Source of the DNA: Lepidodermella squamata
Lineage: Eukaryota > Animalia > Gastrotricha
DNA: 64,000 nt
Assembly (NCBI GenBank): GCA_047495785.1
Contig: JBLDXI010000003.1
Location: forward strand, 3,348,001 to 3,412,000
Direction of reading: 5' to 3'
The notes below the pieces were generated by a model. That model made no database searches, had not been told where the DNA came from, and saw nothing but the letters and a program-made list of their open reading frames with translations. Position numbers and translations under genes: made by a program. Shown one piece after another: positions 15,079-40,036 of the stretch. The first letter of the stretch is position 1. Every line of letters begins with the position of its first letter.

Positions 15079-15830
15079 TTATGCTCTCATTTTCAAATGA
15101 ATTTTTTCGGCCCGGTGAATGAGTTGTTGCCAAAGTTTTTCGTCAATCTTGATTTCGACTGAAGCCAAACTGTCCTCTTGACTTTCGGAGGAGTCGGGTC
15201 TGTCATTGCTGTTGGTTTGGGTATGATAAATCGCTGGCGAATTGATCACGTTCTCGCCCTGCCTTGACGATTTAAGCAGGAAGGAGTCAGCTTTTACGTG
15301 GGGATTAGCGTCCTCAATATCCGCGTCTGAATCGAAAAAAATGAATAATACATAAATTAATAAAAAAATATTTTTTTTCATGATTTCAACAAATTTCTAG
15401 TTCTCGGATTTTTTTTCATTCGCAAAAATTAAAGCGTGAAATTAACAGAAGTTGAAGGGGAAAATGAATTAAAAATGCTACTATAATTTAAAATCGAAAA
15501 TTACAAACGTTGATCTGGAGCCTTTTCATCGATAGTCATCTCCAGAAAGGTTTGGGGCAATGTCGTCAGATCGAATCCACGCGTCGGCTCGTTCGTTGTC
15601 GTTGATACTTCAGTGGTTGCTTCAGTGGTTGCTTCCGCTGTCGTCACTGTTGTATCGATTTTCTGTGTCGTAGTGACGAACCACCAGCGATTCCACTTCG
15701 GAGCACCATCAACAACAGAAATGGAAGCTAACATGGTCGTAAAAATATCAGCTGAGGGGCATCATTTTTCTTATAATTTACCGAGGCAAAATAGCATCGT
15801 GATGATTGTAAACTTCAAACAGGGTTTCAT
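15079..15830 (-). CDS. Secreted cluster gene A: signal peptide, KWNRWW peptide, Thr-rich acidic region; ~171 aa
   Basis: Exons 15830-15782, 15727-15509, 15326-15079. Spliced N-terminus MKPCLKFTIITMLFCLASISVVDG-APKWNRWW; length divisible by 3. Confidence 0.75.
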
Positions 15831-16235
15831 TCGTTTAGCGTATTATGGTTGTTAAGATGAAAATGGCGAAGTTGAGGTCGATGTTCGATGAAATAATCAG
15901 TGAGATTTGTCGATCATTTGAAGTTCAACTCAGCGCAAAATTAGGTGACCTAGAGCCACACAAAGTATTTCATATTTTGAACAAGCACGTGCCACTCCAC
16001 GCGACTTCAGTAATCGCATGCAACCTACTTTCTCTGAAAAAAGTTAAAAAATTGTGAAAAAGTTCCAAATTAATAAGAAAAAATATTGGAGTAATAGTTC
16101 ATTTTATTGTTCGGCTTTTGAAAAAAATGTAAAATTGAAAGTAAAACCAATCGCGTGTAATAAATATTTGGTCATCAATAATTATATGAAAAGTTCAATT
16201 GTAAAATAGAAAATGATAAAACTGAGAGCAGAAGT

Positions 16236-18035
16236 CTACGAGCAATCGGATGAGGCTGATTTGACAATGGGAATCTTCGGCTCATCCGACGCGCAGCTGA
16301 TTGAAGCTGTTTTCGCTTTGTTCTTAGCAGCAGGCTTGCGTTGTTTCGTGACTTTGTGACGCGGTTTTTCCGAGACAGCGCTGCTGCTGATGCTGTCGAA
16401 GTTAATTTCGGGATACGAATTGCTAACATCCTCAAGCGACTTGATGGAAGGAATTGTTTTGACGCGTTTTCTGATGCGCTGTTTAGTCGGACGGATTGAT
16501 TTAGCCTTAAAGGTCTTCCGTCGCCGGGCTCTTTTGTCTTCGATCGAAGATGTGGCTGATTTTGGCTGATGGACCCGATCCTTACGAGCCTTGCGAACTG
16601 TTTTTCGTGGAAACTTGGTCCGATTCACAGATGAAGCTCTCTTCCTTGGTTTCTTCCCCTCACGATCAGGCCGTTTAACTGAAACCGAATCAGATTTTTT
16701 GACTATCTTGCTCGGTTTCTTCCTGATGTGATCTTCGTTTGAGCTGAACCGCTGTTTGACCTTCAAATCTTTGCTGCCGTATTTTCGACGAATTTTCGGC
16801 GAGCTCGATTCAGACTTTTCAGATTTTGCCGCCGCTGAAGCCGAATCGGATATTTTGTCTTTCTTGCTTGGTATCTTCTTAATTTCATCTTCGATTGAGC
16901 TGAACCGCTGCTTGACCTTCAATTTTTTGCTGCCGGATTTTCGACGCATTTTAGGCAAGCTCGATTCAGATTTTTCCGATTTGTTGACAGCCAAAATTCG
17001 ACCTCTTCTCGAGCCCTTGATGTTACTATGAATTCTTCTACGAATAATTGGAGATCGGCGCTTCTTGATTTCAGGCGAAGCTGATGAGACAGAAGCCACT
17101 TTCACCGGCCTCTTCGTCTTAATCCGGCGGTTTTTCTTCTTCGGTCCAGATTTTTGCAAACGGATAGTTTTCCCCTTGAAGGGATCGACTTGAGCGATGT
17201 CAATTTCGGAAGTAACGGGAGCAACATCTTCGTTTTGCTTTGCGCTAGATTGAGCTAATGAGTTAAAAATTCCTCCTTAATAATTCGCATAAAAGGTCAC
17301 ATCAAATTTTATTACTTTCATCGTGTTGGTTCAGCCCGCTGACCTGAATTTGATTGCTTTGACCTATATTGACGTCTGTTTCGATCTGTTTGTTAAATTC
17401 ACCAGCTTCGGCCTTGTTTTCCACAAGATGATTGAATGAGTGAGGTGAGATGACTTCGATGTTCGTATCAAACACTGGATAAACTGGATCTGTTTGGTCC
17501 TTTTGTTTGGTGTTAGGTTGAGCTGGAGATGTGACACAGGGAAAAATGAAGTTCGAACTTTGAAAATTCTTTAAAAATTACCATCCTCAGCGTGGTCAGT
17601 TTTTTGAACCTCGCCATTATCCGTAACGAAGGCTTCAGCTCTCTGCTGCCCTTGCTCATCATTTGTATAAACATGCGTGATGGCAGCTTCGATGCCACCC
17701 GGCTGAGGTGGCGGTTCATTTGGACCATTTATTGGAATGTTGGAAATCGGTTGGTTTGTTGTAGGAGCGTTTTCGCCTTTATCGCCGTTTTTAGTATCTA
17801 GATTGTCGCCAGCAGTACCGGGAGATCGGCTGACTGGGCGAACATTCCACCAGCGATTCCATTTTGAAGCGACCCCGGCCTCAATCAAAGTCACTGAAAT
17901 ATTAAAAATTGAACATAATTATCTTTTTTTCCTACTGCACTTAAAAAAATGAAATTCGGATAATTTATGTTCAAATAACGAACCTGAGCATAAAATGGTA
18001 AAAATAACAAAAATTGTTTTAAAAAATGGTCGCAT
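16236..18035 (-). CDS. Secreted cluster gene B: signal peptide, KWNRWW peptide, acidic N-half, very Lys/Arg/Ser-rich C-half; ~529 aa
   Basis: Exons 18035-17984, 17893-17582, 17522-17316, 17254-16236, all introns phase 1. MRPFFKTIFVIFTILCSVTLIEA-GVASKWNRWW. Internal duplication KSEKSESS.PK.RRK.GSK.LKVKQRFSS.ED.I.K.PSK. Confidence 0.8.
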
Positions 18036-18699
18036 TGAGTGATTCGAACTGTGATTGATGATAAAATATATAGAAAAACAAAACTCGTTAAATTGAAAAT
18101 GCTAATAAGCCCGATTTGAAACTTTCACTCGGATTCAACCCCACGACACGCGATGTGTGTAAAACGACGCACGCGAACAGGTGAAAAAATATGGAGATTC
18201 ATGATAAACAATCCACTTTGAATTTGCTTTTTGCTTTTAGAATTTTTTTCTTCTTTTGGGCTTCTGATTTGTGCGTCCTATCGAGTAAGTTTGTCAATAT
18301 AACCAACGCCGGATCAACGCAAAATGAGCTTCTCGCAAATCAGCTTCTAGAAGAATCGAAATCGATTAGTGTCTGACCTAAATCTCAAATGAGGATCAAA
18401 ATAATTCTCACTCGACATGCGCGTAAAAGTTGGAAAGCAAAAAAATTAATTTAGATTTTTTCAAGCATTTTTATTGAATGAGCAATGATTAAAAGGTAAA
18501 TATTAATTACTGAAACTTCATTCACATCGGGAAATATATGTTTTGTCTGGAAAGAAGTTCATAAAAGCAATAAAATTTGAATGTATGCATCAACATAATG
18601 AAGATAAATCATCAATTTTTCAATATAATAAATCACGGGGATTCGTCTTTCGATAAAATAGTGTCTTCAGGGTACGATGCCGCGTTGATGTTGAGCGAG

Positions 18700-37909: not shown

Positions 37910-38281
37910 GTGTCACCACTTTCAACTGAAAAAAGTTGAACTGACCATCTAATGAAAATGGAATTGACACAGATTTATTGTGTTTCTTCATTTCCGCGGT
38001 ATGAAAATCGAAAATCGAAATAATTTGAAAAAGAGGCACGTGTATGTCGCGTGTGAGTGTGCTCTCCTATCATTCACCAATTTTCGATAAAAAAAATAGA
38101 GCGGAAACGTTTCAACTGGTTTTCAAATTTTATTGCATAATAACAGAATAACATGGATCGAAAAAATAAATAATTCAATTTTCCAGCCGGATGCTAATCA
38201 TAACAGAAAACACGATGTTGCAATAACGATAATTTGTGTATATAACGAGATAACGATGAATATATTTAATTCGCATTCCGA

Positions 38282-39529
38282 CTAATTGTCCTGAACGCCG
38301 ATGATTGGGCGTTTTTTATCAGCGCCAGTGAGCTTGCCAACTTTTTGGAAAATTTTCAGCAAATTACGCCTCGCCTTCTTTTTCACCTGCTTCGACGCAC
38401 TTCCCGACACGCTATCAGTGATTCTCGGGACTGCAGTTGTAGTCGCCTTCTTCGAACTATGCGAGTGACGCTTCTTTCCAAGTCGACGTGATGGCTTTTG
38501 ACTTTGAGCTTTGATGTGGCGCTTATGCCGGTCGCGCCGTGATTTCGAACAGCTTGAATAAGATCGCCTGAGCCGCTCGACCTTTGCGCGTTTCAGCTTC
38601 GGATAACGCCGTCTCGGCCTCATAACTACAACATAGCTCCAATCCATGCTAGATTCGTACTCTGAAAAAATCATAATTAATTGAGGAAAATATTTAAATA
38701 ATTATAAATTTATTAATTAATTAAATTTTAAAAATTTCAATGAAATTTATTAAAAAATTGAATTTTAAAATTAAAAAAAATTGTCTAACTTGAGCTGCAA
38801 CTTGGCTTCTTGACAACGCGGTCTTTTTTGCACGACCTTGACTTCGACTTGGATTTGCCGCAATTTTTATTATTGGCGCCGCACGGCGGAGGAACGTAGG
38901 CCGAGGCAGACGCTGAATTGGACTCTGAAGGCAATTTAACGTTGAACATCGGCTTGACGCGCGGATCCTTTGGCTTTTGTTGCTGCTGCTGTTGAGGTGG
39001 TCTCGGTGGAGCGACTTGAGGTGGTTGTTGTTGCTGCTGTTGTTGCTGTTGCTGTTGCTGCTGTTGCTGCTGCTGTTGCTGTTGCTGTTGCTGTTGTTGA
39101 GGAGGTTTCGGTGGCGCGACTGGATTTTGCGGTGGCACCTGTTGTTGAGCAGGTTGCACTGGCGCAGGTTTATTAGTATCAGCCGCTCCGTTTTGAGGCT
39201 TCAACTCAACTATTGGGACTACCATCTCAGTGATCTCAGTCGGCTCATCACTTTCACTTTCAGACAGCTCGTTGGGATCTATAATTGTCGGTATCTCAAG
39301 ATTCAGAGGCTTCAGGTTAATACTGAGATCGTCGCCAGTTTGAATAACCGGCCGAGCTGCTGATGGAATTACTACGGGCGGCGCGGTGACATTGGTTGGA
39401 TTTTGACTCGATACTGAACATTTAAAAAAAAAAATCGTAAAATTTCAAGCTGCCTACAAGCTATTTATCATGAAATTTACCTGAACAGAATGCAGTTAAG
39501 AGACCGGCTAAAATAACATGACGTATCAT
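38282..39529 (-). CDS. Secreted cluster gene G: paralog of gene E (poly-Gln, Lys/Arg/Ser tail); ~350 aa
   Basis: Exons 39529-39481, 39413-38790, 38661-38282. MIRHVILAGLLTAFCSVSS. Shares QQQPPQVAPPRPPQQQ and KKARRNLLKIFQKVG...RPIIGVQD with gene E. Confidence 0.8.
38978..39098 (-). repeat. Poly-glutamine (CAG/CAA) tract in gene G
   Basis: (TGC/TGT)n on the plus strand. Confidence 0.9.
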
Positions 39530-40036
39530 TCTAGACGTTCATAGGCAATGAAAAATCTATGGAATCCGAAGTTTCATTACCGGCTCGTTTGTTGAAAAAA
39601 TAATTTCCGCGAATTTGTAGGTGTTGTTATGAATGATATTTTAGGCACGTGGACGGTTAAATCGCGCGATTGAAAAAAGTCCGATTGTCACTAGATTAAT
39701 AAGAGCATGAAAAATTTAAATGACACCATTCCTGGCAGAAAATAAGTTTGAAATTTTGCGTAAACAACGTGTCGGCGGTTAAATTGCAACTGTCCGCTGT
39801 TCACCTTTCTTGATTTCAGCTTGAAAGGCTTAAAAATGTGTTTTAATATAACCTAGTAGCCTTGGAGATAAGCTTTCCAGCGGTACCAAACATGAAGCAC
39901 TTTGAAATATGCCTGATTTTTTTTAAATTTAAAATTGCGTGTCTCTGAAATCTTTCAATTCCAAGCCAATCCGAATTCCACTTGATTTCCAAAACTAAAC
40001 TTTTCGGTGAAGCTGCAAGTTCATTTATTGAAAAAT

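Follow-up and report, generated by a model that had tools for sequence, protein, structure and literature searches.

Secretions comparable with the A-G locus

Temporary adhesion in Macrostomum lignano involves Mlig-ap1, a single protein of 5,407 amino acids (aa) that carries C-type lectin, vWD and EGF domains (PMC6410801). It is secreted, has no database homologues and is described as interacting by charge with anionic partners, its KR regions being extremely cationic and rich in Ser, Arg, Lys and Pro (antibody peptide SRKPRRKNRKSRKP); its function was shown by in situ hybridisation, footprints and RNA interference (PMC6410801). We describe here a tandem cluster of seven minus-strand genes, A to G, in a 64-kb stretch of Lepidodermella squamata DNA (hereafter the window), animal DNA with short introns from contig C3 of a 121-Mb, 151-contig assembly. 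The KR regions of Mlig-ap1 may be taken as the nearest functional analogue of the A-G products, a likeness drawn by description, A-G being known from their genes alone. Like Mlig-ap1, they are predicted to be secreted, are without homologues and contain long, extremely cationic Lys/Arg regions (in B-G, with isoelectric points (pI) of 10.4-12.0). Unlike Mlig-ap1, they are without C-type lectin, vWD and EGF domains (Pfam) and are spread over seven genes of 171-1791 aa.

Sabellariid cement and caddisfly (SX)n silk are secreted sets of oppositely charged, repetitive, Ser-rich proteins that are stored in granules. Protein D, with its long K-S/R-S/N-S alternations and its S-x-E sites, may recall them. 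Neither a Gly-rich basic protein nor Gly-rich blocks or H-fibroin-like termini occur in the cluster, homology to these systems is lacking, and the cluster differs from sabellariid cement in having neither a very Ser-rich polyanionic member nor a basic member rich in Tyr or its derivative dihydroxyphenylalanine (DOPA), as Ser amounts to about 7.6-15.5% and Tyr to 1-5 residues per mature protein. With the Pro/Thr/Ser (PTS) mucins, protein C shares its tandem Pro/Thr/Ser units (about 60 of 20 aa) and many sequons, encoded mostly in one giant exon. In contrast to these mucins, it has a pI of 12 and 17% Lys, the other six members are not PTS proteins, and no vWD, C8, TIL, Cys-knot or SEA domain is found in A-G by Pfam.

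The mammalian REST/semenogelin-SVS cluster and the epidermal differentiation complex encode transglutaminase substrates that become cross-linked into extracellular or envelope material. Like A-G, these are tandem arrays of simple genes in which a terminal exon or motif is conserved and the repetitive body, rich in Gln and Lys, evolves fast, whereas homology is lacking and the intron phases and exon plan differ. Finally, antimicrobial-peptide precursors with an anionic propiece, such as the Hydra arminins, have in common with A-G a signal peptide, an acidic N-terminal part and a highly cationic C-terminal part, but A-G exceed them in size ten- to a hundredfold, are dominated by repeats, are rich in Pro, Ser and Gln and have more than one exon.

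Seven spliced genes under constraint

The seven genes follow one another between 15079 and 39529 as complete open reading frames (ORFs) with canonical GT-AG introns (Table 1), in models whose junctions were read by eye. Each begins with a short first exon (49, 52, 46, 49, 52, 52 and 49 nucleotides (nt) from A to G) that starts with ATG, codes for Met followed by a basic residue and a hydrophobic core, as in a signal peptide, and ends at GT in phase 1. An earlier note on this DNA had reported seven consecutive minus-strand genes, each headed by a signal-peptide exon of 46-52 bp and a phase-1 intron, and our models reproduce this description in seven cases out of seven. The introns are mostly 53-90 nt long with T-rich acceptors; all the first ones and most of the later ones are in phase 1, the exceptions, in phase 2, being two introns of C and one of D. 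An AATAAA is present 52-226 nt past the stop codon of every gene. Since all seven predicted signal-peptide exons splice in frame, secretion of the A-G products, as the earlier note had proposed, is supported by the gene models.

Acceptor-like sites are also seen 0-17 nt upstream of four start codons, those of F (37909), E (34864), G (39529) and B (18035): TTTTTTCAG stands 17 nt before the ATG of F, CAAGCAG immediately before that of E, CTAG 1 nt before that of G and CACAG 13 nt before that of B. They would be compatible either with spliced-leader trans-splicing or with introns in 5' untranslated regions.

Two patterns of divergence argue that A-G are real genes under constraint. The first is found in D, where three of the mini-exons (29825-29736, 29662-29573 and 29508-29419) encode identical 29-residue peptides while differing from one another by 6-8 synonymous and 0 non-synonymous changes, their flanking introns being only about 50% identical; this shows strong constraint on the 29-aa unit as a whole. 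The second is found in C, whose 4.6-kb repeat is open in all six frames. Among 60 units chosen on nucleotide similarity alone, the variants are 30 synonymous and 17 non-synonymous in the frame dictated by splicing, versus 9/38 and 3/44 in the other sense frames. Variation among the repeat units of C is thus concentrated on the third codon positions of the predicted frame. As the codon-aligned antisense frame scores alike (31/16), the strand of C is set by its splice junctions and not by the synonymous count. A-G are, on this evidence, constrained coding genes, with purifying selection acting on their repeat units.

Promoter boxes common to the seven genes

When the 350 nt upstream of the seven ATGs are scanned for enriched words, CACGCGA/TCGCGTG and CACGTGC/GCACGTG come out on top. 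With the GGCACGCG variant included, these boxes occupy 16 distinct sites in the window, of which 14 lie 112-510 nt upstream of the A-G ATGs, at least one per gene, and only two lie elsewhere (49872 and 57367). Their pairing is clearest in E, F and A; the weakest case is C, which has a single box of the variant type. If the two heptamers are defined on E, F and G alone, 7 further sites are found in the 2.4 kb that precede A-D, for an expectation of about 0.08 (P about 1e-11, Poisson from the box rate outside promoters). The promoters of A-G have no longer k-mers in common, so that the boxes are conserved islands rather than remnants of recent duplication.

These shared boxes support a putative co-regulation of A-G. 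Their cores, CACGTG and CGCGTG, are presumably of the E-box or bHLH-PAS-like type (bHLH, basic helix-loop-helix). The composite GCACGTG-N2-12-TCGCGTG has 13 sites in the genome versus 3 for a reversed control. Control of the CrebA/Creb3L type was considered and rejected, because the CrebA core is G/TACGT (PMC3003312), unlike the cores found here.

Charge, composition and disorder of the products

The predicted proteins B-G have a net charge of +37 to +350, and A, with a pI of 5.1, has a net charge of -8. In 40-aa windows, the N-terminal part of B, D, E, F and G is negatively charged (-10 at the lowest), +9 to +16 being reached further on, and C stays at +8 to +14 almost throughout. The succession given for most members in the earlier note, an acidic or Pro/Thr region and then a Lys/Arg/Ser region, is found in B-G, C being basic over nearly all its length, and A is acidic. 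In B, the acidic block (cumulative charge -16 by residue 214) precedes a Lys/Arg/Ser block that holds a duplicated 156-nt unit. In F, it precedes an Arg/Lys/Ser block with SNSKP and SKPW. E is built of a Pro/Thr and acidic block, a poly-Gln region, an Arg/Ser/Cys-rich block and a C-terminal helix, and G of an acidic block, a poly-Gln run, PPQVAPPRPP, a Lys/Arg/Ser block and the helix; Gln makes up 21% of E and 13% of G.

C consists mainly of about 60 copies of a 20-aa Pro/Thr/Lys/Ser unit, and its overall composition is 21% Pro, 13% Thr, 15% Ser and 17% Lys, with 74 N-x-S/T sequons and 81 His. D contains 18 H-x-x-C-x-S-H-E motifs, 12 KPW triplets, 27 Cys, 24 Trp and 136 S-K/R or K/R-S dipeptides, in runs such as KSKSKSRSNS. 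In all 18 motifs, S-H-E makes an S-x-E triplet, a kind of site that casein kinases of the secretory pathway use.

A Pfam scan of every exon of A-G gives no family at or above its cut-off. The last exons of D and G are predicted by AlphaFold to be disordered (predicted template-modelling scores of 0.16 and 0.23), except for the C-terminal helix that they share (residues 161-188 only in the last exon of D; residues 88-112 only in exon 3 of G, with a predicted local distance difference score of 85-92). The absence of a globular domain, claimed earlier from the letters, is thus borne out by both approaches.

Table 1. Coordinates in the window of the A-G gene models, their motifs and the boxes upstream of them.
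Feature	Span	Strand	Exons or sites	Product or placement	Further features
Gene A	15079..15830	-	15830-15782, 15727-15509, 15326-15079	171 aa, pI 5.1, acidic, Thr-rich	KWNRWW 15681-15698; AATAAA 98 nt past stop; second intron predicted, weak GTTTGT donor
Gene B	16236..18035	-	18035-17984, 17893-17582, 17522-17316, 17254-16236	529 aa, pI 10.4	all introns phase 1; KWNRWW 17847-17864; tandem repeat 16679-16982
Gene C	18700..25130	-	25130-25085, 24377-24207, 24073-23740, 23577-18949 (giant repeat exon), 18895-18700	1791 aa, pI 12.0	KTKV stretch 18742-18795
Gene D	26826..30875	-	12 exons: signal exon 30875-30827; exon 2 30767-30492; eight phase 1-1 mini-exons of 75-96 nt each within 30359-28794; large exon 28646-27632; last exon 27477-26826	900 aa, pI 11.5	RWNKWRNR 30709-30732 (exon 2); ten H-x-x-C-x-S-H-E / KSKS..SNSKPWKPW repeats (large exon); KTKV stretch 27297-27347 and C-terminal helix 26940-26984 (last exon)
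Gene E	33336..34864	-	34864-34813, 34495-33336	403 aa, pI 11.6	poly-Gln runs of 9, 49 and 17 parted by PPQVAPPRPP at 34167-34196 and 33990-34019; C-terminal helix 33420-33464
Gene F	35682..37909	-	37909-37858, 37802-37404, 36199-35682	322 aa, pI 11.1	C-terminal helix 35715-35771; intron 2 (1204 nt) predicted, holds tandem repeats; AATAAA 52 nt past stop
Gene G	38282..39529	-	39529-39481, 39413-38790, 38661-38282	350 aa, pI 10.5	poly-Gln 25 at 39025-39099; PPQVAPPRPP 38995-39024; C-terminal helix 38330-38374
A boxes	15985..16157		GCACGTG 15985, CACGCGA 15998, TCGCGTG 16151	155-321 nt upstream of ATG	
B boxes	18147..18176		CACGCGA 18147, 18170	112 and 135 nt upstream of ATG	
C box	25343..25350		CGCGTGCC	213 nt upstream of ATG	single variant-type box
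D boxes	30997..31390		GGCACGCGA 30997, TCGCGTG 31384	122 and 509 nt upstream of ATG	
E boxes	35151..35357		GCACGTG 35151, TCGCGTG 35167, CACGTGC 35351	287-487 nt upstream of ATG	
F boxes	38036..38053		GCACGTG 38036, TCGCGTG 38047	127 and 138 nt upstream of ATG	
G box	39645..39651		GGCACGTGG	116 nt upstream of ATG	

Shared modules and origin of the family

Several short motifs recur among the members. A Trp-rich peptide lies directly past the predicted signal-peptide cleavage region of A, B and D, as KWNRWW in A (residues 27-32) and B (28-33) and as RWNKWRNR in D (29-36), and the N-termini of A and B are similar (E-value 3e-5). D, E, F and G end in a module A-x-x-N-L/V-x-K/R-I, whose helical hydrophobic moment is 0.56-0.96 and whose profile matches exactly four places in the 121-Mb genome, those in D-G. 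The helix is preceded by KK, KKK or RKR, keeps its non-amphipathic Ala and Asn positions and is followed in E and G by an RPII-V-D tail. PPQVAPPRPP stands beside poly-Gln twice in E and once in G, two genes that are collinear paralogues along their whole length. SNSKP and SKPW are found in 6 and 5 copies in D and in one copy each in F.

The earlier note had listed these four modules, with the same distribution, and all of them were located again. It had also listed a KTKV helix in C and D, which is weaker than described: the match between C and D is not significant by BLASTP and the stretch is not predicted to be helical (AlphaFold, last exon of D). Its idea that modules had been shuffled among the genes goes beyond the data, because none of the shared modules is a separate exon, and tandem duplication is favoured instead. 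The pattern of modules would fit better with tandem duplication followed by fast low-complexity divergence, only a few short motifs being retained, and A-G appear best explained as a lineage-restricted family grown by tandem duplication.

Searches for relatives

No real relative of A-G was recovered in the protein collections searched. The C-terminal half of E and the basic exon of B have no match in a word-indexed search of 5.8 billion proteins, the last exons of G and F have no usable match in the ESM Atlas, and two metagenome scans, with the E/G helix profile and with the D exon, return no real relative; the two metagenome "relatives" given for the D exon are KPW-like pieces, short and interrupted by stops. 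When 1.84 billion representatives are searched exhaustively with the D repeat exon (HMMER), the sole match is to a fish NLR-type protein, whose N-terminal repeat is unrelated. Taken with the Pfam result, these searches agree with the orphan status that had been anticipated, no orthology to a described family being seen. As the protein searches do not return the ORFs of this genome itself, the assembly evidently lies outside those collections; that close relatives are absent is for this reason weak evidence, and more weight attaches to the lack of any distant family.

Within its own genome, the N-terminal exon of B matches only itself. The last exon of G has a weak similarity (E-value 0.03) to a Lys/Pro/Ser-rich gene about 87 kb past the window end. 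At this place (G000:C3:3497263-3500463, minus strand), successive basic ORFs are rich in Lys, Pro and Ser (KPK-PV-KK..., with SESS stretches) and look like another polycationic low-complexity gene. A second cluster of cationic secreted repeat genes lies 195 kb away (G000:C3:3604000-3613999, plus strand, genes starting at 3207, 4509 and 6414). It has a 46-49 nt phase-1 signal exon, ASASVNK-SASASAG...GRRRRGNF repeats and 23-26% Lys+Arg. In spite of the same signal-exon design it is without the boxes, and it is a family unrelated to A-G. As regards the host lineage, the genome has no cellulose synthase, and a search of it for the nematode cuticle-collagen N domain was empty, as it also was in all 14 control genomes.

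A possible extracellular material

Ahead of the other functions weighed here, we tentatively place the possibility that A-G form a tandem family of secreted, disordered, charge-blocked polycations, placed under common bHLH-type control in one secretory cell type and destined for an extracellular material. A factor of this type would act on the E-box or CGCGTG sites to transcribe A-G, and the proteins would enter the endoplasmic reticulum and be stored in secretory granules, where the acidic protein A and the short N-terminal blocks, acidic or glycosylated, would partly neutralise the Lys/Arg/Ser blocks. The conserved C-terminal amphipathic helix of D-G could be an element of granule sorting or self-association. 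Once released, the polycations would bind anionic surfaces or glycans and yield an extracellular material, which could be an adhesive, a mucus-like coat or an envelope.

If such a material hardens, the chemistry involved could be: (i) disulfides formed by the Cys of D, E and G, (ii) that of the His/Cys motifs of D and C, (iii) cation-pi contacts of Trp in the KPW repeats of D, or (iv) Gln-Lys isopeptide bonds between the poly-Gln of E and G and the Lys of B, C, D, F and G, the co-occurrence of poly-Gln and Lys suggesting transglutaminase cross-linking as an additional, putative chemistry. That A-G may build a glue, tube, cocoon or slime which sets by coacervation or through metal or disulfide cross-links, as the earlier note put forward, is plausible; their composition suits several secreted roles equally well. 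From the interpretation of the earlier note, that of one co-expressed gland secretion, we keep secretion, orphan status, the absence of globular domains and, from the upstream boxes, a probable common regulation, and we read module shuffling rather as tandem duplication.

Several points weigh against an extracellular material made in one cell type. Among the listed sequencing runs that contain the region, none is recorded as RNA; one run labelled "RNA?", with 0.31-0.36 of the region's words, was not counted as expression, since its 118 M letters come close to the 121 Mb of the genome and it may be DNA of a relative about 3% diverged. The acidic blocks, which total -2 to -16, are far too small versus the basic ones (+37 to +350), so that self-coacervation is not implied and an external polyanion would be needed. 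Tyr, the precursor of DOPA, is nearly absent, and the Ser content is far below that of polyphosphoserine cement proteins, which is very high. The box set was found post hoc. Moreover, 11 other sites of the composite adjoin unrelated genes (P450, alpha-amylase family, ankyrin, RhoGEF and HSP20), and consequently the boxes do not define a gland-specific regulon; the factor acting on them is apparently not dedicated to the A-G cluster.

A more precise proposal is doubtful: A-G as a self-contained, co-regulated, multi-component adhesive or tube cement, made by microscopic invertebrates of a lineage whose glue is undescribed at the molecular level. C would then be a giant cationic mucin-like scaffold, D a His/Cys/Trp repeat cross-linker, E and G poly-Gln partners for Gln-Lys bonding, B and F basic fillers and A an acidic partner. 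The private C-terminal helix would sort the members into granules, and one bHLH-type factor would switch the genes on via the TCGCGTG and GCACGTG boxes. In the literature, no molecular work was found on the adhesive proteins of rotifer pedal glands.

Alternative functions

After an extracellular material, we rank second a coat that does not set, and third a role in defence. The first of these alternatives, which we consider rather unlikely while keeping it as the nearest competitor, is that A-G coat the gut, integument or reproductive tract as cationic mucin-like proteins, serving to lubricate, to bind food or microbes, or as an egg or sperm envelope. C, a classical tandem-repeat Pro/Thr/Ser protein with 74 N-glycosylation sequons, and the Thr-rich A would suit this role, but no vWD, CK, SEA or other mucin anchoring domain is detected by Pfam, and such an extreme positive charge is unusual among mucins. 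Secreted repeat proteins that evolve fast and are encoded in clusters are a typical feature of mucosal and reproductive secretions. Several other, unrelated cationic secreted repeat clusters in the same genome, and the P450 and alpha-amylase-family genes that adjoin the composite box pair, point the same way, whereas the Cys/His/Trp motifs of D suggest a chemistry of cross-linking or binding.

It is less likely still, and in our view improbable, that A-G are defence polycations or precursor polyproteins of antimicrobial peptides, from which convertases cutting at dibasic sites would release cationic peptides, the C-terminal helix included. A signal peptide, an anionic pro-region and a cationic region make up the layout of many antimicrobial-peptide precursors, and the anionic-then-cationic order is found in B, D, E, F and G; these proteins are nevertheless large (322-1791 aa over B-G) and dominated by low-complexity Pro/Ser/Thr/Gln repeats without a hydrophobic face. 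Possible cleavage sites abound, as each protein has 9-80 dibasic pairs, and B, D, E, F and G also have 1-4 R-x-K/R-R sites, yet the repeats of D are constrained as whole 29-aa units. The C-terminal helix, placed after KK, KKK or RKR, is cationic and strongly amphipathic (moment up to 0.96), and the Trp/Arg-rich KWNRWW at the mature N-terminus of A and B would also be in keeping with an antimicrobial peptide. The conserved Ala and Asn of the helix and the RPII-V-D tail of E and G, however, make it resemble an interaction motif and not a membrane-lytic peptide.

That A-G are intracellular basic proteins, sperm nuclear or nucleic-acid-binding, made from transcripts without the signal exons, is very improbable. 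The Arg/Ser/Lys-rich E, F and G do resemble protamine-like and SR-type proteins, and the use of exon 1 is a prediction. Against this, all seven genes keep an in-frame signal exon, alike in length and phase, whose donors are good and whose introns are short, no alternative in-frame ATG in a promoter-like context was seen, and the acidic, Pro/Thr and sequon regions make no nuclear sense.

Hardly credible, finally, is the idea that A-G are dead genes or no genes at all, their open frames being created by simple repeats: the models are known from sequence only and the C repeat is open in all six frames, but the synonymous-only divergence of the D mini-exons, the third-position bias of C, the completeness of all seven spliced ORFs, each with a signal peptide and a poly(A) signal, and the motifs conserved between paralogues all speak against it.

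Neighbouring genes

Directly upstream of the cluster, on the plus strand at 704-9975 of the window, are two tandem paralogous genes with signal peptides; by eye, they look like genes for VIT and von Willebrand A domain proteins of the inter-alpha-trypsin-inhibitor-heavy-chain type. On the other side, an apparently intact long interspersed nuclear element (LINE; 49541-54018, plus strand) has an ORF1 of 530 aa with a CCHC knuckle and an ORF2 of 965 aa with endonuclease and reverse-transcriptase motifs (by eye), and its presence explains the rise in GC content at 50-54 kb. A duplicated pair on the minus strand (40037-42842 and 55044-57581) combines an ankyrin-repeat ORF (290 and 125 aa) with a paralogous ORF of 344 or 357 aa.

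Significance of the locus

The new elements brought by this analysis are the divergence of the D mini-exons at synonymous sites only, the third-position bias of C and the occurrence of boxes at all seven genes. If A-G do make up one secretion, they would provide seven probes for the gland product of a little-studied small animal, together with a candidate motif for sorting and a candidate cis-regulatory code, and a domain-free, purely low-complexity set of polycations would join the known designs of wet adhesives and coats. The value of the locus is limited in that animal genomes commonly contain such lineage-specific sets of secreted repeat proteins, and nothing here links A-G to a material. 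Whatever its function, the locus is a clean example of orphan secreted-protein evolution, in which the promoter boxes, the signal exon and some short motifs appear to have stayed conserved through tandem duplication, while the repeat bodies were replaced and expanded under purifying selection on their units.

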